A stretch of 64,000 bases of DNA from Carpediemonas membranifera BICM (taxonomy: Eukaryota > Protista > Fornicata): NCBI GenBank assembly GCA_019828565.1, contig JAHDYR010000038.1, forward strand, positions 760,735 to 824,734, in the 5' to 3' direction. A program made the position numbers and the translations under genes. The notes under the pieces are model-generated. The model saw only the letters and a program-made list of their open reading frames with translations, had not been told where the DNA came from and made no database searches. The first letter of the stretch is position 1. The number at the start of each line of letters is the position of its first letter. Shown here piece by piece: positions 899 to 62,492 of this stretch.

Positions 899-2275
899 TC
901 ACTGCCGCGGGCTATACGTAGTGTGGAGCAGCTCGTGGGCCTCGTGACTGCCGGGGGCGCCACCAAGCATGGACGCGTACAGCCGCTGGAGAGTGTCGTT
1001 CTCCTGGGACTTGCGGTGGCCCTTGGACCTGTCGATGCTGTAGAGGCCCTCGGCCCGCTTCGGAACGTTCTTCTTGAAGGCCTTGCCCTTGGGCATCCCG
1101 CCGCCGCCGACACAGCCGCCGGGGCAGGCCATGACTTCAACAAAGTCGAACTTATCGCCAGCCTTGATGCGCTTGATGAGCTTGGCGATGTTGTCGCCGC
1201 CGCTGACGACCGCGACCTTCAGCTCCTTGCCGTCGAGCGCCACCGTCGCCTCCTTGATGCCGGCCTTTCCAGGGCGGACGGCTCCGTCAAACTCTACGTT
1301 GGGGGCGGGCTTGCCAGTGGCAGCCTCGTGAGCGAAACGGAGAGCAGCCTCCATCACGCCACCGGACGCGCCGAAGATGTCACCGCCGCCGGTCGACTCG
1401 CCGAAGAACTCGTCAAAGTCTGCTGCCGGGAGGGCCTTGAGGTCGACCTTCTCGGCAGTGAGCATGCGGCCGAACTCGCGAACGGTGCAGACCTCATCGA
1501 TGTCGCCAGAGAGCTGCTCGCGCTTGATCTCGTCCTTCTTGGCGGTGCAAGGCATGAATGAGACAAGGTAAATGTCCTCGGGCTTGACACCGAGCACCTG
1601 GCTGAACTTGTGGCGAATAACAGCGCCAGCCATGCCTTGGGGCGAGCGACAGGAGGAGAGGTTGGGGATGAGCTCCGGGTAGACCTTCTCGACCATGTTG
1701 ACCCAGCCGGGGCAGCAGCTAGTAAACATCGTGCCCTGGCCCAGCCGGGAGAGCAGCTCGGTGCCCTCCTCCATGATGGTCAGGTCGGCACCGGTGTTGG
1801 TGTCGAAGACATAGTCGAATCCGAAGGCCTTGAGGGCGGCTACCATCTGGCCGGTTGAGTCGGTGCCCGCGGGGAGGTCGGCCTCCTCGGAGATGCCGAC
1901 GCGGACGGATGGGGCGGTGATGGCGACACAGATCTTGCCGTTCTTGTTCTTGTTCTTGAGGGTCTCGAGGACTGTCTTGGAGGCGTCCTTCTCGTAGAGG
2001 CAGTCGACTGGACAAACGACGGCGCACTGGCCGCAAGAGATGCAGTTAGTGTCCTTGAGAGGGGCGTTACCGACAGTGATCGGGGGTTCGGGATCGTCGG
2101 ATTCCTCGTATACGTTGAGAGACTGGCTCTCGCACGCATCCACGCAGCGATCGCAGAAGATGCACTTGGCGTAGTCCCTCATGATCGAATTCGAGGAGGC
2201 GTCCGTCATCATCGCGGACAGAGTCCGGGGGAATAGCGTAGAGGCTGAAAAGGACTGAGTGAGGGCTGAAAGCAT
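899..2275 (-). CDS. hydA: [FeFe]-hydrogenase (group A) with 2x[4Fe-4S] ferredoxin domain and probable MRO targeting peptide
   Basis: H-cluster motifs L1 TSCCPGW, L2 MPCTAKKDE, L3 EVMACPGGCVGGGG. Two CxxCxxCxxxC motifs. C-terminal AHELLHTTY. N-terminus MLSALTQSFSASTLFPRTLS is Ser/Thr-rich and has no acidic residues. Confidence 0.95.
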   Translation of the reverse strand: MLSALTQSFSASTLFPRTLSAMMTDASSNSIMRDYAKCIFCDRCVDACESQSLNVYEESDDPEPPITVGNAPLKDTNCISCGQCAVVCPVDCLYEKDASKTVLETLKNKNKNGKICVAITAPSVRVGISEEADLPAGTDSTGQMVAALKAFGFDYVFDTNTGADLTIMEEGTELLSRLGQGTMFTSCCPGWVNMVEKVYPELIPNLSSCRSPQGMAGAVIRHKFSQVLGVKPEDIYLVSFMPCTAKKDEIKREQLSGDIDEVCTVREFGRMLTAEKVDLKALPAADFDEFFGESTGGGDIFGASGGVMEAALRFAHEAATGKPAPNVEFDGAVRPGKAGIKEATVALDGKELKVAVVSGGDNIAKLIKRIKAGDKFDFVEVMACPGGCVGGGGMPKGKAFKKNVPKRAEGLYSIDRSKGHRKSQENDTLQRLYASMLGGAPGSHEAHELLHTTYSPRQ

Positions 2276-6904: not shown

Positions 6905-9272
6905 CCCGCGTGCCTCTCGCGGTCGAGTCGTATCCACGGCACTGCGAGTATCATCCGCTGGTCGAGGTTGACAGGCGAGGGTATCGACCGAACGCCCTGG
7001 GGCACCGGGAATCCGCAGATAAACGATGAGTGCGGTGCTTGGCCTTCTTGAACCAGGCGTGCACGCTGGGTCCAGGAACCTCGCGAGGGTGGTGCGGTCG
7101 ACCCGGCTGCGGTTTGACGGGGAAGGAGGGCAGGGAGAGTAAACGGAGACGGCGACATGGAGCACGAGCTGGCAGGGTCAAGCTGCTCCGAGCATCCATC
7201 GCACTGCTACAACAGACCTTTACTCATTCCACGTATGGCCGCACCTGCACCTCATGTGTTGGCACCCGCCGTCCTTGTAGTAGCGCACGCCGCACCCGGG
7301 GCAGCGGCGATAGCCCAGTCGGTTCGCCAGCATCTCGTCGTAGTGCTCGCAGCTGCCGTCGTGGATGACGGGGTCGTCGTGGCCGAGGCAGACTGTGTTC
7401 CCGCACCCGCGGCACGCAAGCTGCCTCCGGTTCGCGCTGACCGTGGCCGAGCGATGGCAGTGGGGGCACGCGAACGTGCGCAGCCTGGCGACGCCCTCGG
7501 GCAGGTCGACTGTCTGGCGCGGCGCCATCTCGCACTCGCCGCCGTAGTGGGCCATGTGCTCTTCCTGGCTGGCCACACAGAGCAGGCACTTGTGGCAGAA
7601 GTCCTGGCCGCACCGGCACGCCGAAATCTTGCAGCTGTCCAGGTCGCCCTCGCGCGTTGTCAGCTCGCCGCATGTGGGGCAGCGGCGGATGACGGGGACG
7701 TCCACGGCGGCGCCTCTGCCGAGCGTGACCAGACGGCACGTCTGGAGGATGTCGTTCTGCTCGACCAGGGCGTCGATCTCGGCCCGCGAGTAGGGCACGC
7801 GGCGCGGGATGACGTAGAAGTCGGCTGCCGCGACTGCTGTAGCAGGGGCCGAGTCGAGCACCGCCTGGCGCATCTGGCCGGCGTCATCCAGACGAGGGAG
7901 GCGGGCGCCCCCCGCGCAGTCGGAGTACACGCGGTGGTCGTCGTGGAGGGTCACGCCGACGGAGGCGGGCTGGGGGAGCTGGCCGCCGAACACGTGGAAG
8001 GCGAAGCGGCGGCGCGTCTCGTCGTCCTCGAGCACGGCGCGGAGGGCGTCCTGCACGCCCTGGCTGTCCGCGGGGAAGCGCAGCGGGGCGAGCACGGCGG
8101 CGACCGTGAGCGGGTTGGGGCGCACAAGCAGGGCCCGCAGCTGGGCGGCGGTCAGCGCGAGGACCTTGGCGCTGAAGCGCGTCTTCGCGGCCATGCCGTT
8201 GCGGACGATCTGCATGCGCTCGGCGAAGCGGCGTCTCACCTCGTCGCCGCGCGCCTTGAGGTCGCCCTCGAAGCCCTCGAGCGGGCACGCGGCCGCAGCC
8301 TCCGCAACAGACCGCTGCAGCGCCCGGGCGACGATGGGCATCAGCGCTCCCAGGTCGACGCGGCCGCCCGTGAGCGCGACGAGCCAGGCGTCGCTGACCA
8401 TGTCCGCGGGCAGGGTGATGCCGTCGAGCAGCATGAGCTGCAGCACGCGGCCGAGCCCCAGCAGGACCGGGCGCAGGTCGTCGAGCGGCATGCCGAGGGC
8501 GTCGGGCGAGAGGACCAGCGTGCCCTCGCGGAAGATGGGCACAGCGAACTCCATGCCCCCGACGGCCTGGCGGACGGCCACGCGCGGCAGCTCGACGACC
8601 AGGTCGGACAGGGCCTTCGCGGAGTCGTCGCCCGAGAGCGTCGCGGGGATGGCGAACAGGTCCTCCTCGCACGCGGCGATGGTGGCCAGGCTCGCCGAAA
8701 CGTCGTCAGCGAGGGCGATGTCGATCGGCTCCTCGCGGAACATCTGCAGGCGCGCGCGGTCGATGTCGTCGACGAAGGCGTGGGCGCTCGCGAACCTGCT
8801 GCTCGCCGCGTTGAGGTCGACCTCGGGATCCAGCTCGTTGGCCGAGGCGGCGAAGAGGCCGTCGGCCAGGGCGCGGCGGACGGACCAGCGGGCCTCGGGG
8901 TGGGTGGCGAGCATGCCGGAGAGCACCTCGCGCATGGCGTCGGGGACGGCGACGGTGGCGAGCAGGGCGGTGCAAAGCTGGTCGTCGTTGACAGTTGAGA
9001 ATTCTGTGAGTTCACCGATGAGGAGAGCGAGCAGCCTCTGGCAGAAGGCGGGGTAGTCCGGCGCCATGGCCCCGAGCATCGTCAGGCCCGCGTGGTAGAC
9101 GTCTGCGGCCTGCTGCTCGCGGTGGCTCAGCTTCTTCCCGGCCTTGCGGGCGGCGATCTCCTCGGGCGCGCTGAAGGCGAGCGTGCCGATGTTCACTCCG
9201 GTCGCGGTCGCGTTCACGGCGTCCATGTTCGAGGCCGTCTCGAAGTCGACGAGCACGGGGTGGCCCTCGCGC

Positions 9273-9304
<32 letters not shown>

Positions 9305-12300
9305 ACAGACGCCCGCGCTGTGCAGGTCGTGGATCGCGGTGAGCAGGCCGCGGAGCAGTCTGCGCTGAGTGTCGGGCGAGTCGGCTGGGGCGTCGCGCAG
9401 GTGGCGCTCGAGGCGCTCCATGACGATCGCGCCGGTCTTCCTCTCAGGATCAGAGAGGTCGAGGAGGACGAAGTGCAGCCTGGGCACGGCGGGGCTGTGC
9501 GCCATGCGCGACAGGATGCCCGCCTCGCGGTCGCAGAGCTTGCGCTGGTGCGTGCTGTCGAGCTTGAAGGTCTTGGCGAAGTAGGTCTGGCCGTCGCGGG
9601 CCACGATCTGGCATAGCGCTCTGTTCTCGCTGACGGTCGACTCGACGGTGAAGTCGGACAGCGACAGGTCGGCGCGCATCTCGGGGAGGTCCATGAGGTG
9701 GGCCAGCCCCATCTCGCGCAGCTCCGTGAAGAGGCTGGCCGACGGCGCGGCGGACACCTTCAGCTCGGGGCAGAGCCGGACGAGCTGCGGCGTGCGGCGG
9801 GCCAGGACGGCGTTCATCTCGGCGATGCTGGCGTTCACGGCCCCGAGCTCGGCCGCGACCTCGGCGGCCTGGGCGTGCCTGCGGCGGCGACGGAGGTAGC
9901 TGCCATCGTCTTCGAGCTCCTCGGCCTTGCTCTTGAGGTGCTGGTAGTCGCCGAGCGTCTGGAGCTGCGCAGTGATGGCGTCGGCCTCGGCGAACCCAGC
10001 CACGTGGACCTCAGCCTCGGCGGCCAGGCCAGTCAACTGGCGAATGGTGCGCTCCTCGGTGCTCGTGTCATTGACAAGCTCCTTCCGACCGAGGGCCCAC
10101 TGCCACGTCTCGCGGACGGCCTGCTGGAGGAAGGCGCGGAGCGTGGCGTACCTAGCCTGCAGCTCGGGCGCGAGGGTGGGGAAGCCGGCGACCTCGTTGT
10201 CAGCGGCCTTGAGCACGCGGGCCATCTCGTCGAGCGAGGGGAGAGACTCTGGCTCGAAGGCGGCGGCGCCGTCGACGATGGCCGAGGCCGCCTGGTAGTC
10301 AGCGCTGACAGCTGCGACCGTCGCCTCGAGCGCCTCGACCCCGGCCTTGGCCTGGGCGATGACCGCCTCGTACTCGGCGATGCGGGTCTCTGGCTGGCGT
10401 CTGGCATGGCCGAGTCGGCTGATGAGACCAGCGGGCGACGGGATGGGGCCAACGCCATCGTGGGCCGGGATGGCGGCCGAGAGCAGGGGGTGGCCCTCGA
10501 GCATGGCGCTGATGTCCGCGGCGCGGTTGGCTTCGGTGAACCGGCCGGTCTGGGGCGAGGCGCAGAACGAGGCCAGGGTCGCCTTTAGGTCGGACAGCTC
10601 AGCACTGAGCATGTTGATCTGCGCGGTGCTGTCGGCCTTGACTGCTGCGAGCTCATACATCGTGCAAGATAGCTCAGACCTCGTGTCGAATAGCTCAGCT
10701 CTGAGCAGCCCCATGTTCTGCTCGGCCCGGCTCTCCTGCTCGGCCATGGCTGTCTGAAGCATGCGGCAGTTCCCATCAGAAAGGATCGCGTCGACCTCGA
10801 GGGCATGCCGGTCGGCGCTGAACAGGCCATCGGTCAGAGTGACGGTTGTGGCTGGGTCGGCGGTGGTGACAGTGAAGCTGCTCGGCACTGCGTGCGATGA
10901 GACGTGAGTCACGACCTGCCTCAGCTGGTCAACAGTCGCGTCGATCAGGAAAACGTCCGAGACGGCTCCCGAGCAAAGATCGGAGACAACCTGGGCACAC
11001 CGGCTGGCGTTGAAGCATCTGACAATCTTGGCAAGCCCGGCGTCCTCGGAGTCTGTCTCGGCGAACTTGTTCTCCAGCCAGACTCTGGCGGCGGGGCGGG
11101 TCAGCGTCATCGTGAAGGAGCGGGGCAGACCAGTGGCGAGGAAGTGGAGGAGGATGCGAGCGAGGTCGCAGGGGAGTGCTGCTGAGTCGCCTGGGTTGAT
11201 GGCGATGTCGGCGTCGGGGGCGACTGGGCTGGAGCAGCGCTGGTTGACGGTGGCCAGGAACTGGGGGATGCGGGGGAGTGTGCTCCAGAGCCTGACTGTA
11301 TTGTCGTTGGACCCAGAGACGAGGATAGAGCCGTCTCGGGAGAAGACGACGCTCCTCACCACATCACCATGCCCCGAGAGCGTCCTGATCAGTGCCCCGG
11401 TCGCGCCCCACTGCTTGATAGTTTTGTCTGCAGACCCAGACGCCAGAGTCCTGCCGTCGGGGGAGAAGGCGAGGCCAAACACAGAACTGGTGTGCCTGGT
11501 GTGCCCAAAGGGCGTGGCCGGCATGGCAAAACCCGCTCTGTTGCCGAATCCCCCGACCTGCGCAGTCTGCCCGAACGCGGACCTCGGTACATCCCTGCTG
11601 TGCCCAGCGAGGGTAATATGGGGAATAAGCTGGCCAGTTGCAGGGTCCCACAACTTGACGGCGTTATCGCTGCCGGATGCGACGATGGCCCCATCGGGTG
11701 ACACGGCAATGCTGTAGACTTGTGCGCCATGGTTCATGGTCCTGATGCATGCGCCAGTGGCGGAGCTCCACTGCTTGATCGTGCTGTCAATACTTCCAGT
11801 GTAAATGGTCGAGCCATCAGGGGAGATGGCCACGCCATACACATGATGGCCATGCCCTGTGAGTGTCAGCCTGCACTGCCCTGTCGCGACGTCCCAGACC
11901 TTGGCGGTCGTGTCATCCGATCCGGAGACCAGGGTGCGGCCATCAGACGAGAATGCAAGGCGCCACACAAATCCAGTGTGCCCACTGAGTGTCTGGGTCT
12001 GCTGGCCTGTGGCTGCGTCCCAGAGCTTGACGAGATTGTCCCGCCCCCCAGACGCGATGGTCGACCCGTCCGGCGACACGGCAACGGCGTACACATAGCC
12101 TCCATGCGTCATGGTCCTGATACACTGACCAGTGGCCGAGTCCCACTGCTTGACGGTGCCGTCAAGTGAGGCACTGAAGATGGTGCCGTCGGGGGAGGTG
12201 GCGACACCAAGCACCTGATTGCCATGCCCTGTCAGTGTCTTAATGCACACACCAGCATCCATAGGCTCTGTGGACCGCGTGTTCCACGCTTCGAGCGCGA

Positions 12301-13063
12301 GCTCAACCGAGCCATCTTCATGGTCGGCCTCGAGTCTGCCATCCACCATCGTGACGGTAACGGCGGGCTCAGTGAGCTCCATCGTCAGCGTATCAGGTTC
12401 TATGCCCGCGCTGAGCAGGTACTGGACGACCTGCTCGAGGTCCTGGACGGTGATCGGCGTCTCGCCTCGCTTGCGGACCTGGATGCCCTCGGGGCCGGGG
12501 CGCTCGGAGATTGCGGTGCGGATCTGAGCGTCTACTGCTCTGCAGTCGTCGCTGCGTGAGAATGCGGCCTCGATACGTACCACTGGCTGTGTAATCATGA
12601 AATTTGCGGATCAAACGCGTCAGGCGTGCTGTGTGAGAGAATCGCGCTGCAGCCGTGTTGCTGCTGTTGTAACGCACCATCTGTGTGAGAATAGCTCCGG
12701 GATAGCGTACTTTCGGCAGCTTCGCGTCATCGAGAGTTTGTGTGTTGCTCGAATGTCGCGTGACGAAAATGGTCTAAACTCCGCTGCCTCCGCAACACCC
12801 CGCGCCGTCAGCATTTACCTGCGCCCGGGCGTCCTCCCCCTCATCAGGTCCCCGGCCGTGACCTTGGTCGACTTCAGCACGCTCAGCGGCACCCTCCGCC
12901 CCGTAGTCCATCGCCAGCACAATGCTAGGTTTACAGCGCTCACTCGAGCAGACTGATGCGGCAGACCTTGCAGCCCACGAACCCGTCCCGGACGCTTCAA
13001 GGCGGTCGCTTCGAACGGCAGCGCGATTTTCGGGCGTAAACTGCTCGCGACCGACATGGGCAC
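6905..13063 (-). repeat. Copy A of duplicated unit (full-length WD40-kinase-HECT-RBR gene plus flanks)
   Basis: Reverse complement aligns with 35177..38050 from GTGC(C)CATGTCGGTCGCGAG to GAGGCACGCGGG, and with 59931..61446. Confidence 0.9.
7220..12598 (-). CDS. Multidomain protein: N-terminal repeat, WD40 propeller, coiled coil, Ser/Thr kinase, HECT-like domain, RBR-type Rcat/IBR/Rcat zinc fingers
   Basis: About 7 GH..SPDG..SGS.D..VK.WD repeats (~11280-12262). Kinase FAKTF, HRDLKPEN, DFE, GTLAFSAPE, ADVYHAG (~8850-9660). HECT-like GLGRVLQLMLLDG...RRRFAFHVFG...SDCAGGARLP (~7850-8700). IBR and CPGC..KDGGCQHMRCRCG (7220-7690). Confidence 0.9.
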
Positions 13064-15746
13064 CGGGGCCTGGCTATTCCTGCTGCTCACGGTTGCTGCT
13101 GCCGCGGATATCGCTGTAACAGAGACGCAGCGCCTTTCGTCAGAATACCCAGCGGATTTGAACCGTTTTGGGGTGGATCTCATGGTCTGTGGCACGCTGG
13201 CCTGCATCGGGCAGTTCAACAACAACGACGCAACGGGGCGTGCCTTTGTGTACCAAACTACGGACGGTGAAACATGGTCTTTCCTGCACGAACTCCAGCG
13301 CGATGATTTCTCCGCTCCCGGCGATATCGCCAGCAATTTCGGGAGCTCATGCGCCCTTGACGCCACTAGGATCGCTGTAGGCGCAGAAGGAGACGTTATT
13401 ACCACCCTGGCGGACGCCGGCTCGGTCTACATCTTCGAGGCCACCGGGGCACCCGCCCAGTGGGAGCAGGCCGCCAAGGTCACGCCCGACACGCCCGAGG
13501 CGGACGCCAGGTTCGGGTCAGCCGTGGCAGTGGCCGGGGACACTCTGGTCGTGGGAAGCAGCGGATATTCCGGCTCGGGAGCGGTGTATATCTTCAAATA
13601 CGGCTCGACATGGACTCAATCGAATCTATTCGCACCGCTCCCAGCTGATACGGGCTACAGATTTGGCTGCTCGGTAGATATTGACGGAGATTGGATCGTA
13701 GTCGGGGCTGACCGCATCAGCGTGGGCGGGGTTGGTGCTGTTGGCCAGGCCTTCGTCTACCAGAACACCGGGGCGCAGTGGGTCTACCATGCTGTCCTCA
13801 CGCCCACCGTTGTCGCAGAAGACACATTCTTTGGATCGTCGGTCAGTGTATGTGGAGATACGATTGCGGTCGGAGCTGATGCAAGTCCTGGAGTGGAGCT
13901 GTCCTCGACAGGGGTGGTCTATGTCTACAGGTTGAAGGGCACGACCTGGGCGTTCGCCGCCAAGCTGAACGGGACCGAGCCTGGCGAGAAGTTCGGCCGT
14001 GACGTCAGCCTCAGTGGGGGCGTCCTCGTGGTCGGGGCCACTGGCCGGGGTGCAGTGGCGGACTCGGGCAACGCCTATGTGTTCATCGAGAGCCACGGCG
14101 TGTGGATTCTGACGCAGACCCTCGGCTCGGCAGCCCCCGTGGCCTCAGCTGTCCTGGGCGGTCGCGTGGCAGTCGACGGCGCGGCCATCCTCGCGACAGC
14201 GTGGGGCGAGGCCAATGAGCAGGGTGCCGTCTACTTTTTCGACAACCAGTGGGGCTACTGCCCGCCCGGGACGTACAACGCGGCCGGGGTGTGCGTCGAC
14301 TGCTCCACCCTCGGGGAGTACGCCGCTTGGAACCAGACGGCGTGCAGTCCCGCGGCGGTCGGGTCCTTCAGCGACGACTACAGGACCGAGGTCGCCTGCA
14401 CGGATGACGGGGCGTACACGAACGTCACCGGCAGCACCGAGTGCGTGACGGCGACGGCGGGGTGGTTCGTCGACCCCTCCGACCACACCAAGCAGCGGCC
14501 CTGTGACGACGAGTGGTACTCATCGGACCCGGGGCAGGCTGGGTGCACGGCATGTGAACCTCTGACGAGCACGCCGGCCGACGGGGAGCCGCACACGGCC
14601 TGCACCGGCTACGTCATCCCGGGTGACGTTACGGCGCTCAATACGACGGTGATGACAACACCGCTCGACTCGGCCACGGTCGATGGCGTGAGCTGCGTCA
14701 CCCTGGTCTCGGGCCCCGTCACGTTCCTCGTCCCGCTCATCGCCCCGACCAATGGCGTGATCAAGTCGGGCGTGTACGCCATCACCATGACGTTCGGGGC
14801 CCTGGTGGAGACCGCCACTGTCACTATCATGACCGACATCCCAGTCAATCCAGACCTCGCCATCGACGGTATGAGTCTGACAGCCACCATGGCCTCGCGG
14901 GTCTGCCCGACACTGTTTGCGATCGACGGCATGGCATGGTCGACCCCGCCGAGTCAGTTTGAAGTCGTCGAGTCGGGTTCAGTGGTGTGCACAGCCACGG
15001 CGGGGCTCAGCTCTGAGAACATCACCGCGCTCGCCCCGCACTTTACCACAACAGTTGCTGCTGATGAAGAGGAAGGGGTTGTCTGCCTCGCCCTGGCCGA
15101 GGCATCCTTCGTCAGCATTGGTCTTGTTGCCGTCACCATCGATGATGAGCCCCTAACCCTCGCCCTCTCCGGCGGCATGGCGTGTGGCGTGACCATCGGC
15201 CCGTTTGAAACCGTCATTTCGTCTTCAGTCCTGGAGGCCTTCTACGGGTCGACCCTTATCGCCACGTCGAAGCCGACCCCCGCCAGTGACAGCTCGATGC
15301 TGACGACAGTAGCTGTTGTTGGGGGAGTTGCCCTTGCTGGCGTTGTCGTGGCCATTCTCGTCATCATTGTTCTCATAGGTGACGTCGCCGCCTGTCTCGT
15401 GTGCGTTCCTGTTGTACTATACCTCGTAAGATACCGGCAACGGAAAGCCGAGCTGCCCAAGACCACTGCTCCCATTACCACCCCGGCACCGTCATCCATC
15501 CCAAAGCTCGACCTCGGGCAAGCGCCTGCCCCACCGCCCAAGGAGACGCCCCCGGCCAAGCTTCCCCCCCTCAGCCTGCCCGGCCCCAAGGTATGCATCC
15601 CGGCAACTCTGAGCGATACCATCAGCACGCTACACACGCCAGAGGCCATGGCGTCGTTGAAGGTGCCGAGCAGACCGGCTCTGCCTCCTGCGGGGAGCGC
15701 CTCCTCCATTCCCTCGATCCCGAAGCTCCCGGGGATCGCACCATGA
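13056..15746 (+). CDS. Type I membrane protein with FG-GAP beta-propeller, Cys-rich repeats and Pro-rich cytoplasmic tail
   Basis: Signal peptide. Repeated FGxxVxxxGDxxxVGA...GAVYxF. CPPGTY/CxxC repeats. Hydrophobic segment near aa 750-790. Confidence 0.85.
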   Translation: MGTGAWLFLLLTVAAAADIAVTETQRLSSEYPADLNRFGVDLMVCGTLACIGQFNNNDATGRAFVYQTTDGETWSFLHELQRDDFSAPGDIASNFGSSCALDATRIAVGAEGDVITTLADAGSVYIFEATGAPAQWEQAAKVTPDTPEADARFGSAVAVAGDTLVVGSSGYSGSGAVYIFKYGSTWTQSNLFAPLPADTGYRFGCSVDIDGDWIVVGADRISVGGVGAVGQAFVYQNTGAQWVYHAVLTPTVVAEDTFFGSSVSVCGDTIAVGADASPGVELSSTGVVYVYRLKGTTWAFAAKLNGTEPGEKFGRDVSLSGGVLVVGATGRGAVADSGNAYVFIESHGVWILTQTLGSAAPVASAVLGGRVAVDGAAILATAWGEANEQGAVYFFDNQWGYCPPGTYNAAGVCVDCSTLGEYAAWNQTACSPAAVGSFSDDYRTEVACTDDGAYTNVTGSTECVTATAGWFVDPSDHTKQRPCDDEWYSSDPGQAGCTACEPLTSTPADGEPHTACTGYVIPGDVTALNTTVMTTPLDSATVDGVSCVTLVSGPVTFLVPLIAPTNGVIKSGVYAITMTFGALVETATVTIMTDIPVNPDLAIDGMSLTATMASRVCPTLFAIDGMAWSTPPSQFEVVESGSVVCTATAGLSSENITALAPHFTTTVAADEEEGVVCLALAEASFVSIGLVAVTIDDEPLTLALSGGMACGVTIGPFETVISSSVLEAFYGSTLIATSKPTPASDSSMLTTVAVVGGVALAGVVVAILVIIVLIGDVAACLVCVPVVLYLVRYRQRKAELPKTTAPITTPAPSSIPKLDLGQAPAPPPKETPPAKLPPLSLPGPKVCIPATLSDTISTLHTPEAMASLKVPSRPALPPAGSASSIPSIPKLPGIAP

Positions 15747-25824: not shown

Positions 25825-28800
25825 TCACCACCGGCCGGGGGTGCTGAAGACGCTACTCTGGAGGCCCCGCAGCGTCTCTACCGTCATGCCGTCCTCGCAC
25901 CGGACGGAGTGCAGCCGCGAGATGACATGGCCAGCCACATCCGCCGTCCGGGCATGGCTCAGGGCGTTCCTAACGCTCCTGTCGGTCGACCCAGCGCACT
26001 CGCCGATGTGCTTGAGCAGGACCGTCGTCGCCTGGGCCAGACGGGAGACCATGGTGTCGGAGTCGATCTCAACGTCCGTGTCGTCGTCGATGGCCAGGAT
26101 GAAACGGTCCGAGGCGGCCAGGGCGTCGTAGCCCTGCACCAGGGCAGTCAGTGGCGCGTTGGGGGCCGCCAGGAAGCCGTTGATCACGGCAAGAGTGGGG
26201 GCTCCCTTGAAGGCCGCGTAGCACTCGAGCTTGGACAGGACGAACGCGATGGGGAGCAGAAGGGGGTCAGACTCTAGGGCCAGGATGATGTCAGCAACCT
26301 GCTCGAGTCCGGCCTGGGCACTCGGCGCCATGAGGCCGTCGGACGAGGACTCCGCGGGGGCGACGACGTGCTGGCGGATGAGCTGGAGCCACAGGGACTC
26401 AGGGACGGCCTCGTCGCCGTTGTACCCGCCCAGCTTGAGCAGTTTAAGGGCGACGTCGTAAATGCGGAGGGGAACTGCTACGGAGTTGTAGAGCTCGTCG
26501 ATGGACACGAGGGACGCGCGGAGGCGGTCGGCGTGCTCGACGCACTCGGCTCTGACCGTGATCCGCATGAGGAGCTCCCGCTGCAGCGTGCCGACAGCCA
26601 GCCTGCCCCGGGCATCCTTGGCGAGGTCGGGGCCGTCGGGGGCGGTGCTCTGGTCCGCGAACTGGACTGCGGTGCCGAGCATCTCGAGACGGTCGTCGAG
26701 CGACCTCTGAGGCAGGGCGAGGCCGTCGATGGAATCGCCACTCTCCGCCAGGACGAGCAGCACGCGGGCGGCGTCGCTGTTACGGCCGACGAACCCGTAG
26801 TATCTCCACAGCATGGCGATGTCCGTGGCCTGCAGGAAGGTCTCGAGGAAGGGCGAGGGGGCGCAGTGGGGCAGGATGGGCGAGCCCTCCTGGATGAACG
26901 TCCGGAACAGACACTGGGCCCAGCTGGCGCCGTACTTCGGGTCGAGGAAGATGGCGAGCATGGCGCGGTGCCGGGGGGATGGGTCGTGGGCCCTGAGGGC
27001 GTCGCACATGGTCTGGACGAGCGTGATCAGCACCCCGATGCTCTCGTTCGGCCGGGTATGCGCCGGGTCCGTGCTCGACGTCGCCGGGGCCAGGGCGAGA
27101 GCGGCCTCGGCACCGGGTTCGGCGGCCAGGCGCTCAAGAGCAAGGCGGGCGGCGGAGTCGGGCGCGTTGCATGCGAGGAGGAGCTCTACGATGTGGTCGA
27201 GCGGGTCGGCTGCCTCGGGGTGGGTGAGCAAGATGCCCACGGCCTGCTGGACGAGGCCGTCAGCCGGCAGGGCCCGGCGTGCCTGGTCGAGGAGGGACGT
27301 CGCCCTGAGGAGCTGCAGCTGCTGGCGGTCGACAATGCTGGGGCACTCGGAAGCGAGGAGCTCGAGCAGGTCGCCCATGGACCGGGCGACGGCGAGGGAG
27401 GAGAGGAGGGCGCGGAGGGCAGCCCGGCCGGTCTCGGTGCCGCACAGGTCGACGAATGAGAGCTGCAGCAGCGCCTGGCGGTGTCCCCGGGAGAGGGGGA
27501 TGGCGCGGCTGGGGGCCTCGAGGTCCAGGTCGGCGAGGCGGAGCAGGAGACGGAGCAGGTCAGCCTGCTGGGAAATGCGGACGGCCTCCTCTTTGAGAGC
27601 GGGGCCCTCGACCGCGGAGCTGACCGACACCTCAGGCAGCAGGCGGCCAGTGATGACGGAGCACAGCCCAGTGAGGGATGCGGCCAGAGGTCTGAGCTGT
27701 GCGCTGGTCCACACGGGGACGATGTGACCCCCACGGTCCTCGAAGGCCACGCGGGACCGGACACCGACGAGTGCTCGTCTCGAGTTGAGTGCGATCACCT
27801 GGTGGGCCGTGGAGAGAGCGGTACCAGCCCGGCCGGCAGTGCTCTGGGGGGCCGACAGCGCGTGCTTGATGAACAGCCGCAGGGCCTCCCTTGCGGTGGT
27901 GTCTGGGACCCGTCCGATGCCGGGGGACCCGATGTCCATGGGGACGGCCAGCTGGAGGGCCATGGCGGCTGTCTCCACAGGGCCCCACAGGGCGACGAAG
28001 GCGTCGCGGGCCCTGACCATGGCGGGGTCGAGGGCCTTGCGGAGGGTGTCAACGGGGCGGTCCTTGTCGATGATGATGACCGCCCGGTGGGTGATGGCAA
28101 CGAACCGGCGGCGGGGCATAACGTGCTGCGTCTCTGTCTCGGCGGCAGGGACGTAGTCGGGCCCGACGTCGTTCCTGGCGGTGAGGGGCACAGCCACGCC
28201 GGGCTGGCCGGCGAGCCTGGCCGAGGGGGGGATCTCGCACAGGGCGAGGACGGCGTCGTCAGCACCGCCCCTGCCCGACTCGGGGCCTGTGGGGATGAGT
28301 CTGAACGCCTCCTTGCCCTCCCCCGCAGACCCGGTGGGGCCGACCGAGGCGGAGATGGCGAGCACGTTCTTGCCGCGGGGCAAGGTCGGGGCGTGGACGG
28401 CGGTGAAGTAGACGCCGCGGGAGTAGAGGGAGAAGGTGTGCTCGGCCGCGGTGTGGTCGGGCATCGGCGGGGCCGGCCGGGCGGTCTGTATCGCGAGCCG
28501 GGCCTTCTCAAAGAGGCCGCTGACCTTGGAGAACATCACCCGGATGCCCTTGTTGGTCGTGGCGACCAGGCGGATATGCCTACTCTCGTCATCCGCGAGC
28601 GTGGCCAGTGACACGAACCTGAGGCCCACTCTGAGCCGCCCCTTGTCGCCAGGCTGCCCCAACCCGACGACATGCGAGAGTTCTGACAACGAGGTCTTGT
28701 GTGACGTGACGTACACCGCCCCGTCGTCTGTGAGCCGCCATATGGAGATGGTGCCGTGCTCGGTCAGGGTGTACAGCAACCCCTCGTTGTCCGCGGCAAC

Positions 28801-29445
28801 GTCCACTAAGGGGTCCCGGTCCCGACGGAGGGCGTAGGGCAGGATAGTCGAGAGGATTGACGAGTTATACGTCGAGACCTTGGGGCGCGGGTTCGAGAAC
28901 ATCAGAAAGTTGCGGGGCGTGTACGTCACCTCGAGCAGGTCGCCCGAGAGGCAGGCCAGGAAGACGCGGTGGTCGTGTGTGAATATCTTAAGCACCGTCT
29001 GGCCGCCGTGGGAGCACTCGAAGGAGGGGTAGGGCCTAAGTGTGAGGGGGGAGTCGGGCGACCGGGCCGAGACGTGCGAGACGCCGATAAAGTGCACCTT
29101 GTCCGCTGTGGCGACGACAAGGACATACTTGTCCTGGAATATGTCGGGGTACGGGTTGAGGAGGGCACAGGAGACGACGATGGACTCGAAATCGTCCTTG
29201 GAGAAAGTGTCGCCAGACTGGTTGCCAAAGGAGAAGAGATGGAGCTGGTTATCCACTGTGAACCATGCGTGCCCGATCTCAGGAAGAATTCCAACAAAGC
29301 TACGGTTTCTAACACGCGCCAGATGCGTCGTAAGATTCATTGGCACTGGTATGGAGGTAACAGAGAACAGAGCCTCGTCATCTTCATAGCCTGTGTTAAT
29401 ATACTGTGTAGTGAGGTACATACTATTCAGAGCGTTGTAAGACAT
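25825..29445 (-). CDS. NUP155: Nucleoporin Nup155/Nup170
   Basis: GILPEIGHAWFTVDNQLHLF, LWRYY...AA.VL..LA, SLDDRLE.L..A, ELYN..A.P. Confidence 0.88.
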   Translation of the reverse strand: MSYNALNSMYLTTQYINTGYEDDEALFSVTSIPVPMNLTTHLARVRNRSFVGILPEIGHAWFTVDNQLHLFSFGNQSGDTFSKDDFESIVVSCALLNPYPDIFQDKYVLVVATADKVHFIGVSHVSARSPDSPLTLRPYPSFECSHGGQTVLKIFTHDHRVFLACLSGDLLEVTYTPRNFLMFSNPRPKVSTYNSSILSTILPYALRRDRDPLVDVAADNEGLLYTLTEHGTISIWRLTDDGAVYVTSHKTSLSELSHVVGLGQPGDKGRLRVGLRFVSLATLADDESRHIRLVATTNKGIRVMFSKVSGLFEKARLAIQTARPAPPMPDHTAAEHTFSLYSRGVYFTAVHAPTLPRGKNVLAISASVGPTGSAGEGKEAFRLIPTGPESGRGGADDAVLALCEIPPSARLAGQPGVAVPLTARNDVGPDYVPAAETETQHVMPRRRFVAITHRAVIIIDKDRPVDTLRKALDPAMVRARDAFVALWGPVETAAMALQLAVPMDIGSPGIGRVPDTTAREALRLFIKHALSAPQSTAGRAGTALSTAHQVIALNSRRALVGVRSRVAFEDRGGHIVPVWTSAQLRPLAASLTGLCSVITGRLLPEVSVSSAVEGPALKEEAVRISQQADLLRLLLRLADLDLEAPSRAIPLSRGHRQALLQLSFVDLCGTETGRAALRALLSSLAVARSMGDLLELLASECPSIVDRQQLQLLRATSLLDQARRALPADGLVQQAVGILLTHPEAADPLDHIVELLLACNAPDSAARLALERLAAEPGAEAALALAPATSSTDPAHTRPNESIGVLITLVQTMCDALRAHDPSPRHRAMLAIFLDPKYGASWAQCLFRTFIQEGSPILPHCAPSPFLETFLQATDIAMLWRYYGFVGRNSDAARVLLVLAESGDSIDGLALPQRSLDDRLEMLGTAVQFADQSTAPDGPDLAKDARGRLAVGTLQRELLMRITVRAECVEHADRLRASLVSIDELYNSVAVPLRIYDVALKLLKLGGYNGDEAVPESLWLQLIRQHVVAPAESSSDGLMAPSAQAGLEQVADIILALESDPLLLPIAFVLSKLECYAAFKGAPTLAVINGFLAAPNAPLTALVQGYDALAASDRFILAIDDDTDVEIDSDTMVSRLAQATTVLLKHIGECAGSTDRSVRNALSHARTADVAGHVISRLHSVRCEDGMTVETLRGLQSSVFSTPGRW

Positions 29446-35176: not shown

Positions 35177-38050
35177 GTGCCATGTCGGTCGCGAGCAGTT
35201 TACATCCGAAAATCGCGCCGTTCGAAGCGACGCAGTGCTGTGGCCTGGATCACGGCCACTACTGCAGCGAGGCTGGGGAGTGGTATCGCGTGCAATGGTC
35301 AGGGACCTTCATCTATCTAAACATGGTCGGCCCCACGTTGTCCGGGACTGGTTCGTGGGCCGCAAGGTCTGCCGCATCAGTCTGCTCGAGTGAGCGCTGT
35401 AAACCTAGCATTGTGCTGGCGATGGACTACGGGGCGGAGGGTGCCGCTGAGCGTGCTGAAGTCGACCAAGGTCACGGCCGGGGACCTGATGAGGGGGAGG
35501 ACGCCCGGGCGCAGGTAAATGCTGACGGCGCGGGGTGTTGCGCAGGCAGCGGAGTTTAGACCATTTTCGTCACGCGACATTCGAGCAACACACAAACTCT
35601 CGATAACGCGAAGCTGCCGAAAGTACGTTATCACGGAGCTATTCTCACACAGATGGTGCGTTACAACAGCAGCAACACGGCTGCAGCGCGATTCTCTCTC
35701 ACAGCACGCCTGACGCGTTTGATCCGCAAATTCCATGATTACACAGCCAGTGGTACGTATCGAGGCCGTATTCTCACGCAGCGACGACTGCAGAGCAGTA
35801 GACGCTCAGATCCGCACCGCAATCTCCGAGCGCCCCGGCCCCGAGGGCATCCAGGTCCGCAAGCGAGGCGAGACGCCGATCACCGTCCAGGACCTCGAGC
35901 AGGTCGTCCAGTACCTGCTCAGCGCGGGCATAGAACCTGATACGCTGACGATGGAGCTCACTGAGCCCGCCGTTACCGTCACGATGGTGGATGGCAGACT
36001 CGAGGCCGACCATGAAGATGGCTCGGTTGAGCTCGCGCTCGAAGCGTGGAACACGCGGTCCACAGAGCCTATGGATGCTGGTGTGTGCATTAAGACACTG
36101 ACAGGGCATGGCAATCAGGTGCTTGGTGTCGCCACCTCCCCCGACGGCACCATCGTCACTGCGTCACCTGATGGCACCGTCAAACAGTGGGACTCGGCCA
36201 ATGGTCAGTGTATCAGGACCATGACGCATGGATGCTATGTGTACGCCGTTGCCGTGTCGCCGGACGGGTCGACCCACCCCGAGGCCCGCTGGTCCGTCCG
36301 CCGCGCCCTGGCCGACGGCCTCTTCACCGCCTCGGCCAACGAGCTGGACCCCGAGGTCGACCTCAACGCGGCGAGCAGCAGGTTCGCGAGCGCCCACGCC
36401 TTCGTCGACGACATCGACCGCGCGCGCCTGCAGATGTTCCGCGAGGAGCCGATCGACATCGCCCTCGCTGACGACGTTTCGGCGAGCCTGGCCAGCATCG
36501 CTGCGTGCGAGGAGGACCTGTTCGCCATCCCCGCGACGCTCTCGGGCGACGACTCCGCGAAGGCCCTGCCCGACCTGGTCGTCGAGCTGCCGCGCGTGGC
36601 CGTCCGCCAGGCCGTCGGGGGCATGGAGTTCGCTGTGCCCATCTTCCGCGAGTGCACGCTGGTCCTCTCGCCCGATGCCCTCGACATGCCGCTCGACGAC
36701 CTGCGCCCGGTCCTGCTGGGGCTCGGCCGCGTGCTGCAGCTCATGCTGCTCGACGGCATCACCCTGCCCGCGGACATGGTTAGCGACGCCTGGCTCGTCG
36801 CGCTCACGGGCGGCCGCGTCGACCTGGGAGCGCTGATGCCCATCGTCGCCCGGGCGCTGCAGCGGTCTGTTGCGGAGGCTGCGGCCGCGTGCCCGCTCGA
36901 GGGCTTCGAGGGCGACCTCAAGGCGCGCGACGACGAGACGCGCCGCCGCTTCGCCTTCCACGTGTTCGGCGGCCAGCTCCCCCAGCCCGGCTCCGTCGAC
37001 GTGACCCTCCACGACGACCACCGCGTGTACTCCGACTGCGCGGGGGGCGCCCGCCTCCCTCGTCTGGAGGACGCCGGCCAGATGCGCCAGGCGGTGCTCG
37101 ACTCGGCCCCTGCTACAGCAGTCGCGGCCGCCGACTTCTACGTCATCCCGCGCCGCGTGCCCTACTCGCGGGCCGAGATCAACACCCTGGCCGAGCAGAA
37201 CGACATCCTCCAGACGTGCCGTCTGGTCACGCTCGGCAGAGGCGCCGCCGTGGACGTCCCCGTCTACCGCCGCTGCCCCACATGCGGTGAGCTGACAACA
37301 CGCGAGGGCGACCTGGACAGCTGCAAGATGTCGGCGTGCCGGTGCGGCCAGGACTTCTGCCACAAGTGCCTGCTCTGCGTGGCCAGCCAGGAAGAGCACA
37401 TGGCCCACTACGGCGGCGAGTGCGAGATGGCGCCGCGCCAGACAGTCGACCTGCCCGAGGGCGTCGCCAGGCTGCGCACGTTCGCATGCCCCCACTGCCA
37501 TCGCTCGGCCACGGTCAGCGCGAACCGGAGGCAGCTTGCGTGCCGCGGGTGCGGGAACACAGTCTGCCTCGGCCACGACGACCCCGTCATCCACGACGGC
37601 AGCTGCGAGCACTACGACGAGATGCTGGCGAACCGACTGGGCTATCGCCGCTGCCCCGGGTGCGGCGTGCGCTACTACAAGGACGGCGGGTGCCAGCACA
37701 TGAGGTGCAGGTGCGGCCAGACGTGGAATGAGTAAAGGTCTGTTGTAGCAGTGCGATGGATGCTCGGAGCAGCTTGACCCTGCCAGCTCGTTCTCCATGT
37801 CGCCGTCTCCGTTTACTCTCCCTGCCCTCCTTCCTCGTCAAACCGCAGCCGGGTCGACCGCACCACCCTCGCGAGGTTCCTGGACCCAGCGTGCACGCCT
37901 GGTTCAAGAAGGCCAAGCACCGCACTCATCGTTTATCTGCGGATTCCCGGTGCCCCAGGGCGTTCGGTCGATACCCTTGCCTGTCAACCTCGACCAGGGG
38001 ATGATACTCGCAGTGCCGTGGATACGACTCGACCGCGAGAGGCACGCGGG
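35177..38050 (+). repeat. Copy B of duplicated unit (inverted relative to A)
   Basis: Near-identical to the reverse complement of 6905..13063, apart from two large deletions and a ~108-bp insertion at 35232..35339. Confidence 0.9.
35735..37735 (+). CDS. Internally deleted paralog (666 aa): N-terminal repeat, partial WD40, partial HECT-like, RBR fingers
   Basis: Same start and stop as copy A. In-frame deletions of 1052 and 74 codons account exactly for 1792-666. Could be a pseudogene. Confidence 0.7.
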   Translation: MITQPVVRIEAVFSRSDDCRAVDAQIRTAISERPGPEGIQVRKRGETPITVQDLEQVVQYLLSAGIEPDTLTMELTEPAVTVTMVDGRLEADHEDGSVELALEAWNTRSTEPMDAGVCIKTLTGHGNQVLGVATSPDGTIVTASPDGTVKQWDSANGQCIRTMTHGCYVYAVAVSPDGSTHPEARWSVRRALADGLFTASANELDPEVDLNAASSRFASAHAFVDDIDRARLQMFREEPIDIALADDVSASLASIAACEEDLFAIPATLSGDDSAKALPDLVVELPRVAVRQAVGGMEFAVPIFRECTLVLSPDALDMPLDDLRPVLLGLGRVLQLMLLDGITLPADMVSDAWLVALTGGRVDLGALMPIVARALQRSVAEAAAACPLEGFEGDLKARDDETRRRFAFHVFGGQLPQPGSVDVTLHDDHRVYSDCAGGARLPRLEDAGQMRQAVLDSAPATAVAAADFYVIPRRVPYSRAEINTLAEQNDILQTCRLVTLGRGAAVDVPVYRRCPTCGELTTREGDLDSCKMSACRCGQDFCHKCLLCVASQEEHMAHYGGECEMAPRQTVDLPEGVARLRTFACPHCHRSATVSANRRQLACRGCGNTVCLGHDDPVIHDGSCEHYDEMLANRLGYRRCPGCGVRYYKDGGCQHMRCRCGQTWNE

Positions 38051-59930: not shown

Positions 59931-61301
59931 GACATGCCGCTCGACGACCTGCGCCCGGTCCTGCTGGGGCTCGGCCGCGTGCTGCAGCTCATGCTGCTCG
60001 ACGGCATCACCCTGCCCGCGGACATGGTCAGCGACGCCTGGCTCGTCGCGCTCACGGGCGGCCGCGTCGACCTGGGAGCGCTGATGCCCATCGTCGCCCG
60101 GGCGCTGCAGCGGTCTGTTGCGGAGGCTGCGGCCGCGTGCCCGCTCGAGGGCTTCGAGGGCGACCTCAAGGCGCGCGACGACGAGGTGAGACGCCGCTTC
60201 GCCGAGCGCATGCAGATCGTCCGCAACGGCATGGCCGCGAAGACGCGCTTCAGCGCCAAGGTCCTCGCGCTGACGGCCGCCCAGCTGCGGGCCCTGCTTG
60301 TGCGCCCCAACCCGCTCACGGTCGACGCTGTGCTCGCCCCGCTGCGCTTCCCCGCGGACAGCCAGGGCGTGCAGGACGCCCTCCGCGCCGTGCTCGAGGA
60401 CGACGAGACGCGCCGCCGCTTCGCCTTCCACGTGTTCGGCGGCCAGCTCCCCCAGCCCGGCTCCGTCGACGTGACCCTCCACGACGACCACCGCGTGTAC
60501 TCCGACTGCGCGGGCGGCGCCCGCCTCCCTCGCCTGGAGGACGCCGGCCAGATGCGCCAGGCGGTGCTCGACTCGGCCCCTGCCACAGCAGTCGCGGCCG
60601 CCGACTTCTACGTCATCCCGCGCCGCGTGCCCTACTCGCGGGCCGAGATCAACACCCTGGTCGAGCAGAACGATATCCTCCAGACGTGCCGCCTGGTCAC
60701 GCTCGGCAGAGGCGCCGCCGTGGACGTCCCCGTCTACCGCCGCTGCCCGGCGTGCGGCGAGCTGACAACGCGCGAGGGCGACCTGGACAGCTGCAAGATG
60801 TCGGCGTGCCGGTGCGGCCAGGACTTCTGCCACAAGTGCCTGCTCTGCGTGGCCAGCCAGGAAGAGCACATGGCCCACTACGGCGGCGAGTGCGAGATGG
60901 CGCCGCGCCAGACAGTCGACCTGCCCGAGGGCGTCGCCAGGCTGCGCACGTTCGCGTGCCCCCACTGCCATCGCTCGGCCATGGTCAGCGCGAACCGGAG
61001 GCAGCTTGCGTGCCGCGGGTGCGGGAACACAGTCTGCCTCGGCCACGACGACCCCGTCATCCACGACGGCAGCTGCGAGCACTACGACGAGATGCTGGCG
61101 AACCGACTGGGCTATCGCCGCTGCCCCGGGTGCGGCGTGCGCTACTACAAGGACGGCGGGTGCCAGCACATGAGGTGCAGGTGCGGCCATACGTGGAATG
61201 AGTAAAGGTCTGTTGTAGCAGTGCGATGGATGCTCGGAGCAGCTTGACCCTGCCAGCTCGTTCTCCATATTGCCGTCTCCGTTTACTCTTCCTGCCCTCC
61301 T
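59931..61301 (+). repeat. Copy C of duplicated unit (5'-truncated)
   Basis: Homology to A and B begins abruptly at GACATGCCGCTC (59931) and runs through the stop codon and 3' flank into the DHHC gene. Confidence 0.9.
59934..61205 (+). CDS. HECT-like plus RBR-finger fragment (423 aa from internal ATG); possible pseudogene
   Basis: Open frame MPLDDLRPVLLGLGRVLQL...GGCQHMRCRCGHTWNE*, matching the C-terminal quarter of copy A. Confidence 0.55.
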   Translation: MPLDDLRPVLLGLGRVLQLMLLDGITLPADMVSDAWLVALTGGRVDLGALMPIVARALQRSVAEAAAACPLEGFEGDLKARDDEVRRRFAERMQIVRNGMAAKTRFSAKVLALTAAQLRALLVRPNPLTVDAVLAPLRFPADSQGVQDALRAVLEDDETRRRFAFHVFGGQLPQPGSVDVTLHDDHRVYSDCAGGARLPRLEDAGQMRQAVLDSAPATAVAAADFYVIPRRVPYSRAEINTLVEQNDILQTCRLVTLGRGAAVDVPVYRRCPACGELTTREGDLDSCKMSACRCGQDFCHKCLLCVASQEEHMAHYGGECEMAPRQTVDLPEGVARLRTFACPHCHRSAMVSANRRQLACRGCGNTVCLGHDDPVIHDGSCEHYDEMLANRLGYRRCPGCGVRYYKDGGCQHMRCRCGHTWNE

Positions 61302-62492
61302 TCACCTTCCCCCGTCAAACGGCACGTGCTGGACTGCCACAAGTCGCCTCACGGCCCGCCTGACGTCAAACCGCAGCCGGGTCGACCGCACCACCCTCGC
61401 GAAGTTCTTGGCCGGACCCAGCGTGTACGGCTTGAACAAGAAGGCCCTCTTCGCCTCCTCCGCGGTGATGTCAAAGTACTTCGGTGCCAGCTCCCCGTGC
61501 TCGGGCTCGGCGTACTGCTCCGGCAGCAGGTCCCACAGGGGGGACGACTGCGTGCCTGCCAGCCTAGCGACCTGGCTGACAGCTGCAGACTTATCCCACA
61601 GCAAGTAAGCCCTGTGGCCGCCCTTGAGGTCGAGCTTGATGGCGTTGCGTTTGCCCATCTCGTTTGTGGTAACGTCGGCACATATCAAGTAAACATGTAA
61701 CACGGTAAATAGCGTCATGGTGATGGCGAATGACGAGTGGAACATCAGGAAAATGCCGAACGGGATCATATGAACGGTCAGGTAGATGCCGACGTTGAGC
61801 AGCAGCACCGGGTTAGCCCAGTCGGAGAGCACGGGCGCCATGATGGACGCAAAGATGCGCACCTGGGCTACTGAGAGATAGATGAGGCCGGCCATGTGCA
61901 GTGCGACGAAGAGGAGGAACCAGCCGTGGTTGAAGAGGCCGATGTCGTTGTTGAGCCATACACAGTGGTGGTCGAACCGAAGGACGCAGGTGTTGCAGTA
62001 CTTGCAGTGCTTGGACCGTGCTGGCTTCGTCCGTTTGCATGTAGAGCATTCGCGGTCGTGGTACAGCTGGTTATCGGCAGGGAACTGGGACAGGAGGCGC
62101 TGCTCGTCCTTGCTCAGCCGGTCTGTGTAGCCGGGATCCGAGCAGACGAGGATGAGGAAGAGTGCGAGGGACGCAGCGTACCCCATGGTACACAGGGGCC
62201 GGTTCCAGGCAGCGTACCGGGGCGGGCTGAGGTCATTGACCGTGGGGATCGTCTCTGGCCCAAAGCTACGGATGTGTGGTGGTTGTTCTACGAGGTATAT
62301 GCGGTCACCTTGGAATAGGGGCGCTTTCCAGGGCCGGAAGAAAAGGAAGTATGCCGTTACACAAGATGCGAGCCAAAGGAAGAGATACACGGCCACCATG
62401 ACAAAATTCGGTCGCTTAACCAGGAATATATACAGATTACGGACCAGCTTCTTCACTCCTCGTTCCGGTTTCGCCTCCGTCATTCTTGACAT
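61302..62492 (-). CDS. DHHC palmitoyltransferase (SWF1/ZDHHC4-like)
   Basis: CSTC...KPARSKHCKYCNTCVLRFDHHCVWLNNDIG, DPG, TTNE, PY..G..KN. Confidence 0.92.
   Translation of the reverse strand: MSRMTEAKPERGVKKLVRNLYIFLVKRPNFVMVAVYLFLWLASCVTAYFLFFRPWKAPLFQGDRIYLVEQPPHIRSFGPETIPTVNDLSPPRYAAWNRPLCTMGYAASLALFLILVCSDPGYTDRLSKDEQRLLSQFPADNQLYHDRECSTCKRTKPARSKHCKYCNTCVLRFDHHCVWLNNDIGLFNHGWFLLFVALHMAGLIYLSVAQVRIFASIMAPVLSDWANPVLLLNVGIYLTVHMIPFGIFLMFHSSFAITMTLFTVLHVYLICADVTTNEMGKRNAIKLDLKGGHRAYLLWDKSAAVSQVARLAGTQSSPLWDLLPEQYAEPEHGELAPKYFDITAEEAKRAFLFKPYTLGPAKNFARVVRSTRLRFDVRRAVRRLVAVQHVPFDGGR

Follow-up and report, generated by a model that had tools for sequence, protein, structure and literature searches.

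Carpediemonas membranifera is an anaerobic, free-living, bacterivorous fornicate flagellate whose genome comprises 24,237,836 bases in 69 contigs. The window considered here is a stretch of 64,000 nucleotides from this genome. On its minus strand, positions 7220-12598 form a frame of 1792 codons which is open throughout, as the original prediction had stated. The frame encodes, in this order, a repeat here named repeat X, seven WD40 repeats, two further copies of repeat X, a coiled coil, a protein kinase, a HECT domain and three zinc fingers of the types Rcat, IBR and Rcat. No transmembrane segment was found in the protein.

12263..12526 (-), repeat X copy 1, about 80 aa, beta-alpha-beta-beta-beta-alpha (iterated profile)
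11264..12262 (-), seven-blade WD40 propeller, candidate sensor (Pfam; sister differences enriched at the top face)
11504-11602 (-), Gly/Phe-rich loop of 33 aa in the propeller
10739..11245 (-), repeat X copies 2 and 3 (confident model, without structural match)
9779..10738 (-), long helical, coiled-coil-like linker (weak coiled-coil family matches; sequence character)
8849..9676 (-), protein kinase (K1009, E1025, HRDLKPEN with D1101 and N1106, DFE with D1118)
7829..8836 (-), divergent internal HECT, candidate catalytic C1561, codon at 7918 (structure model, language-model features, conservation)
7499..7708 (-), Rcat finger 1, candidate catalytic C1656, codon at 7633, without His at +2 (structure match; Pfam IBR, E 9e-8)
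7343..7486 (-), IBR/BRcat-like finger, of which most paralogs retain a four-Cys zinc ribbon
7223..7321 (-), Rcat finger 2, GCxH (C1779, H1781; motif 1778-1781), matching ARIH1, HOIL-1 and parkin RING2

The gene had been described as intronless and as spanning exactly this frame. The frame is real, but its ATG (12598) sits within an intron, and the 5' end contains several tiny introns. In one contig of run X1, 12553-12616 is missing apart from a micro-exon, and a loose end lies at 12680. At the skipped stretches the genome contains GT-AG introns 12710-12681, 12616-12587 and 12580-12552 (30, 30 and 29 nt). Since the skips match GT-AG introns in the genome, run X1 represents RNA.

12711..12730 (-), probable first coding exon, predicted start ATG at 12730 (nine of its letters are joined to 12680 in the X1 contig)
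12681..12710 (-), intron C, 30 nt, GT-AG (X1 loose end and genome boundaries)
12629..12677 (-), intron D, 49 nt, GT-AG, predicted only, with the same 3' end as intron C; retained in the one X1 contig
12587..12616 (-), intron A, 30 nt, GT-AG, holding ATG 12598 (joint 12552/12617 in X1)
12581..12586 (-), micro-exon, 6 nt (letters between the two sides of the X1 joint)
12552..12580 (-), intron B, 29 nt, GT-AG (X1 joint and genome boundaries)

The exon 12711..12730 is in frame with the main ORF only once intron D is also removed. The product is then predicted to start at ATG 12730, to have 1790 aa and to begin with two CxxC pairs, a model of the spliced 5' end that was checked against intron ends and frame arithmetic. 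With intron D retained, as in the X1 contig, the first in-frame ATG is Met73. Contigs of run X1 occupy all 30 bins of the stretch (58 contigs at at least 99% identity), these being separate contigs, none of them gene-spanning, to which sister copies 97-100% identical may contribute. The gene is transcribed over its whole length and spliced at its 5' end. An assembly chimera was ruled out: the same order was observed in no fewer than 11 loci, distributed over 7 contigs, and also, starting with the coiled coil, in a second assembly.

Pfam recovers both the WD40 propeller (seven stretches, E 2e-73) and the kinase (aa 1000-1246, E 1e-20; HRDLKPEN at aa 1099) that had been proposed from the letters; the proposed coiled coil corresponds to the coiled-coil-like linker, to which coiled-coil families match weakly. 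K1009, D1101 and D1118 of the kinase are retained in all close copies and in P0027, the homolog from the second assembly. The kinase has no Gly-rich loop (no GxGxxG), and DFE stands in place of DFG.

The three copies of repeat X around the propeller, each of about 80 aa, were overlooked in the earlier domain list. The iterated profile finds 49 copies in proteins of the family, from 1 to 8 per carrier. A two-unit model is confident (pLDDT 94, pTM 0.85). No match to the repeat was found in Pfam, and none to its structure in the PDB or the viral library by Foldseek; the best VIA match has Z 5.8 and the best Atlas match TM 0.42. The missing match to this model is not proof of a new fold. Genome-wide there are about 90-100 matches to repeat X, many of them in long frames on contig C5 with a spacing of about 1.1 kb; thus the kinase-HECT genes form one branch of a larger family. 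Repeats upstream of the homolog in the second species resemble it by eye, but neither profile test upheld the likeness, and repeat X is not claimed there.

Pfam gives nothing on aa 1251-1590, and no PF00632 match was found in this protein. In the AlphaFold model of aa 1251-1792, the first 240 residues are placed with confidence and the remainder poorly; pLDDT is mostly 60-90 in the HECT N-lobe (aa 1263-1500) and below 50 in the C-lobe. With this model, Foldseek ranks 1-45 are all HECT (best E 5e-5), and VIA gives 16 HECT chains at Z 8.8-13.1, the next best match having Z 4.9. Language-model features point to HECT as well (score 0.86), which is a lead only. In the distant homolog P0027 the Pfam HECT family matches with E 0.0011 and 19.1 bits, below the cut-off of 23.9. 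The N-lobe fold of HECT is present in the model, and to this extent AlphaFold, Foldseek and VIA recover the HECT-like region of the original prediction; its C-lobe is not recovered with confidence.

C1561 is a candidate catalytic cysteine, proposed from motif context and conservation. Its motif context is the one expected from the HECT consensus, and the residue persists in 14 of 14 aligned Rcat-bearing copies and the two distant homologs, although the lobe around it is only 17-30% identical. The N-lobe is 30-40 residues shorter than those of solved HECTs (model positions 39-246 span E6AP 497-741), and by the same consensus the shortening presumably falls in the E2-binding subdomain. The domain is not C-terminal, as 200 aa of fingers come after it. 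The N-lobe fold and, putatively, the Cys motif of the C-lobe are shared with other HECT ligases, especially HERC1 and the divergent class IV (G2E3, GL-Bikonta), whereas here HECT is internal, shortened, below Pfam detection and followed by Rcat-IBR-Rcat. Fusions of a kinase with HECT (GL-Bikonta; Naegleria, Ectocarpus) and of WD40 with HECT (HERC1) are published (PMC3673628); no combination of IBR with HECT is mentioned in that HECT survey.

In the tail, the model of finger 1 matches the catalytic fingers of RNF216, parkin and HOIP (Z 3.5-4.9). Pfam IBR-type matches fall on the first and the last finger. Rcat finger 2 is matched weakly in this protein and with E 2e-5 in P0027; the chain ends ahead of its second zinc site, which is missing. 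No RING match was found in the tail, and both the Cys/His pattern and the structure of finger 1 are those of Rcat. RBR ligases need RING1 for E2 binding (PMC3940038); this tail is Rcat-IBR-Rcat without RING1 and therefore is not an RBR ligase. Thus, of the three RBR-type fingers originally proposed, an IBR/BRcat finger followed by an Rcat with a cysteine in the catalytic position is present, but RING1 is absent and the order is different. Parkin, ARIH1, HOIL-1 and RNF216 share with the protein the Rcat-fold fingers, the catalytic-position Cys and the terminal IBR-Rcat pair; they differ from it in having RING1, where here there are two Rcat fingers and HECT takes the place of RING1.

Homologs of the core were found, among 1.84 billion representatives, only in C. 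membranifera and in assembly GCA_002919055.1, which is probably C. frisia, its GC content of 58.5% being close to the 58.6% of that species; the remaining matches were generic kinases. Sequence searches for relatives of the HECT domain beyond Carpediemonas found none. P0027, encoded in GCA_002919055.1, is collinear with the protein over 1078 aa, from the coiled coil to the last finger (26% identity, E 6e-75), and none of the three candidate catalytic cysteines is missing from it. Farther upstream, P0027 is shifted out of frame by a single base and truncated by the contig end. Since P0027 has the full tail and the three cysteines, the complete tail is the ancestral state, and its end has been lost in most C. 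membranifera copies. In P0042, the HECT C-lobe and Rcat1 are fused to a PARP-like domain (E 0.002). A viral origin was rejected, as viral and metagenome contigs gave generic kinase matches only. In the literature, no description was found of HECT followed by Rcat or of the Carpediemonas family, most subscription journals being outside the search. The original prediction knew of no protein combining all four domains; the pairs kinase-HECT and WD40-HECT are published, as cited above, and no true RBR is present here. The family is real, is expressed and conserved, and is apparently undescribed.

All members with the Rcat1 cysteine also have the HECT cysteine, and both are absent in the same four members. 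On the tree this joint loss needs two or three changes, the tree being poorly resolved and allowing one. Such paired retention suggests a relay of ubiquitin from HECT to Rcat. With RING1 absent and HECT internal, the simplest reading is a transfer from E2 to C1561, from there to Rcat and then to the target, which we propose tentatively as a real possibility. MYCBP2, the RING-Cys-relay ligase, is a two-cysteine ubiquitin relay; the likeness is one of concept, the folds are unrelated, and the comparison is an analogy only. It is also possible, although somewhat doubtful, that the protein has a receptor role without any relay, either with one active E3 module, where HECT is a scaffold and the fingers ligate straight from E2, or with HECT and Rcat acting independently. 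Indeed, G2E3 has a dead HECT next to active zinc fingers (PMC3673628), and RING1-less BRcat-Rcat fragments of parkin are active alone (PMC3940038). Here, too, the N-lobe is shortened and three paralogs retain the HECT fold without the cysteine. However, the persistence of C1561 in all 14 Rcat-bearing copies and both distant homologs, within so diverged a lobe, speaks against this alternative.

The last 542 aa of the protein have 82 matches in the genome, and kinase and HECT occur in one frame at 16 loci (1376-2374 aa). The family consists of at least 16 long paralogs and many fragments; ordinary HECT genes in the same genome number four. Two sister copies lie in the window.

35340..38050 (+), sister copy A, 98% identical, with two in-frame internal deletions of 3156 and 222 nt
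59931..61324 (+), sister copy B, a 3' fragment with 97% identity (fingers and part of HECT)

Sister copy A is without the kinase and most of the propeller. The local duplication and rearrangement named in the original prediction are visible in the sisters and their deletions, but the family is spread genome-wide and is not only local. Most copies stop after Rcat1 with a four-Cys ribbon; the full tail is intact in five copies, all on this contig. The Cys-less paralogs P0019 and P0022 end at HECT, and in P0009 HECT is followed by RhoGEF. Deletions are often flanked by short repeats, and the same deletions recur in different copies and are therefore real. Single frameshifts in copies could be assembly errors.

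Pooled over 11 copies, in pairs that are not independent, dN/dS amounts to 0.28 in Rcat1 and 0.40-0.55 in kinase, HECT, linker and IBR, and the range for the enzyme domains is 0.28-0.52; judged by these ratios, the enzyme domains are under purifying selection. The copy that is the nearest neighbour shifts along the gene, and the identity of L017 to this copy falls from 100% over 100 kinase codons to 50% in part of HECT, which together indicate gene conversion between copies. The flanks of copies diverge shortly past the coding end. One could regard the family as a selfish or neutral amplification, carried by a mobile element or an endogenous virus or generated by error-prone repair, with most copies being debris. 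It would account for the dozens of fragments, the frameshifts and the microhomology-bounded deletions in a species which is without NHEJ proteins and has helitron-related genes (PMC8516963), and whose genome is without ORC too. We consider this very improbable, since transcripts are spliced, dN/dS is below 1, the core is conserved in the second assembly, viral and metagenome contigs match only the kinase, and generically, and the similarity of copies ends soon past the coding region.

In the propeller, amino acid differences from sister copies fall at top-face sites, which make up 13% of WD40 positions, in 10 of 16, 11 of 35 and 29 of 89 cases (p = 2e-6, 2e-3 and 4e-10, respectively), where the site set was chosen after the first two difference lists (P0001, P0002) had been viewed and the third (P0004) is the blind test. 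The differences are concentrated in the d-a loop and the b-c turn, and in HET-E positive selection acts on the same WD40 loops (PMC1805685). This clustering is suggestive of recognition, although every WD40 is tolerant of change at its top face. Distant paralogs share 38-49% identity in the sensor half and 74-87% in the enzymes.

The original prediction had linked the propeller to the fungal HET-E/NWD proteins. This link is an analogy only: no NACHT match was found in the genome and no P-loop in the protein, and the blades of this gene are on average 32% identical (maximum 50%, ungapped). In common with the NWD/HNWD proteins of Podospora (HET-E, HET-D), there is a WD40 propeller, here a candidate sensor, varying in the d-a loop and b-c turn, and the genes form a multigene family that exchanges sequence and contains pseudogenes (PMC1805685). 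In contrast to them, the propeller here is N-terminal, the outputs are a kinase and an E3 and not HET or amyloid, and the repeats within a gene are not near-identical. The protein is neither an NLR nor an RBR. RNF213 combines sensor and E3 in one large chain and tags bacteria in the cytosol (PMC8567218); it is alike in this general design, has unrelated folds and again serves as an analogy only.

We regard it as somewhat probable that the protein senses non-self inside the cell and answers through its kinase and through ubiquitin; in this it would act as an NLR does, or a receptor kinase with an E3 built in, while being descended from neither. The HECT fold, the conserved catalytic residues, the expansion, the top-face differences, gene conversion and full-length transcription agree with the sensor-kinase-E3 reading made from the letters, whereas ligand recognition we infer. 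The main non-immune rival, and the nearest parallel in a relative, is the Nek and Protein 21.1 families of Giardia: the proteins may be ordinary regulatory enzymes, lineage-expanded and acting on self proteins or structures, with propeller variation reflecting different self substrates or relaxed constraint. Both are fornicate expansions of repeats, coiled coils, kinases and zinc-finger E3s with fast turnover; the 198 Neks of Giardia carry mobile ankyrin arrays and coiled coils, some of them also a C-terminal RING, and they are found on the cytoskeleton (PMC3218828). The dN/dS of 0.4-0.6 pooled in several domains would likewise fit loose constraint. However, the Giardia proteins have ankyrin repeats, an N-terminal Nek kinase and RING, where ours have WD40 and HECT/Rcat; no ankyrin match was found among the Pfam families shown, and no sequence kinship with them was seen. 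Moreover, sisters 95% identical differ on the ligand face, outputs include a PARP-like domain, and catalytic residues are retained here while most Giardia Neks are dead. We therefore consider action on self targets rather unlikely.

If the protein is a non-self sensor, the following scheme may be proposed. Firstly, the top face of the propeller would bind a variable ligand, probably non-self, which for a bacterivore could be a bacterial, viral or effector molecule in the cytosol. Secondly, binding would rearrange or cluster the protein through the X repeats and the coiled coil, and the kinase would phosphorylate the adjoining ligase and release it. Such kinase-linked ligase activation would parallel PINK1-parkin. 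Finally, the HECT N-lobe would engage E2~ubiquitin, ubiquitin would move to C1561 and then to an Rcat cysteine, and the latter would ligate it to the bound target or to the receptor itself. The strongest form of this scheme is that a new class of transthiolating E3, with HECT replacing RING1 and relaying to Rcat, shares its chain with a kinase and a WD40 sensor that diversifies, on a scaffold of X repeats, and is an independent, NLR-free metamonad immune receptor tagging bacteria or viruses. Taken as a whole, we consider it unlikely.

HECT and RBR count as two distinct classes of ligase, and a natural HECT-Rcat chain, in which both cysteines are conserved over a deep split, lets the coupling of the two in a relay be tested directly. 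Repeat X adds a confidently modelled repeat without a structural match. A HECT domain can fall wholly below Pfam detection (at least 16 here versus 4 annotated), and counts of E3 ligases in protists may thus be too low. The immunity of free-living protists is nearly unknown; the family provides receptor candidates that bear the marks of a recognition repertoire, and the species, in which no NACHT proteins were detected, can be cultured.

The large kinase-HECT gene (main open frame at window 7220-12598, - strand) lies head-to-head with a gene for an FG-GAP propeller protein. The product of the latter starts with a signal-like segment and also carries a Cys-rich part, a transmembrane-like segment and a Pro-rich tail. 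The other neighbours include several ordinary genes, among them one for a [FeFe]-hydrogenase of the kind typical of anaerobic metamonads.

Neighbouring genes in the window
899-2275, - strand, [FeFe]-hydrogenase with 4Fe-4S domain
13056-15746, + strand, FG-GAP propeller protein, 896 aa
16784-18643, calpain
25825-29445, Nup133-like
38109-40193, RCC1-repeat gene
40541-41806, part of glycine decarboxylase
47665-49122, - strand, second FG-GAP gene
49171-52602, divergent kinesin
62587-63948, ABC transporter

Elsewhere in the C. membranifera genome, contig C5 (about 6-330 kb) contains a dense array of long genes with matches to the X repeat every ~1.1 kb. Most of these genes lack the kinase-HECT core; an ordinary HECT gene is found among them (C5:77984-78835). 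On contig C13, at about 956-961 kb, a divergent family member (P0023) adjoins a second one, tail-to-tail. P0023 has lost both candidate catalytic cysteines, and its N-terminus has a weak Ras-like match (E 2e-4). Identical internal deletions are shared by family copies L006 and L021 (114 nt) and by L019, L024 and L025 (308 nt). The 114-nt deletion is present on two contigs and is bounded by 12-nt imperfect repeats.

In the second assembly, GCA_002919055.1, a single protein (P0042, L033:58-1398) combines a HECT C-lobe, an Rcat finger and a PARP-like catalytic domain. The frame 5' of the second-species homolog (L035:2-1117) has its own tandem duplication of ~72 aa. Three contigs show it running into the kinase-HECT reading frame one base out of register, reflecting either a sequencing error or a split gene.

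One WD40 blade of the main gene contains a 33-aa Gly/Phe-rich loop (11504-11602, - strand), absent from the sister protein P0002. Introns of 29-49 nt, with micro-exons of 3, 6 and 12 nt, are clustered at 12552-12730 (- strand), and this cluster is kept at 98% in copy A, the in-window sister. If one of these introns were retained, the N-terminal CxxC pairs would be lost; such retention could serve as a regulatory switch.
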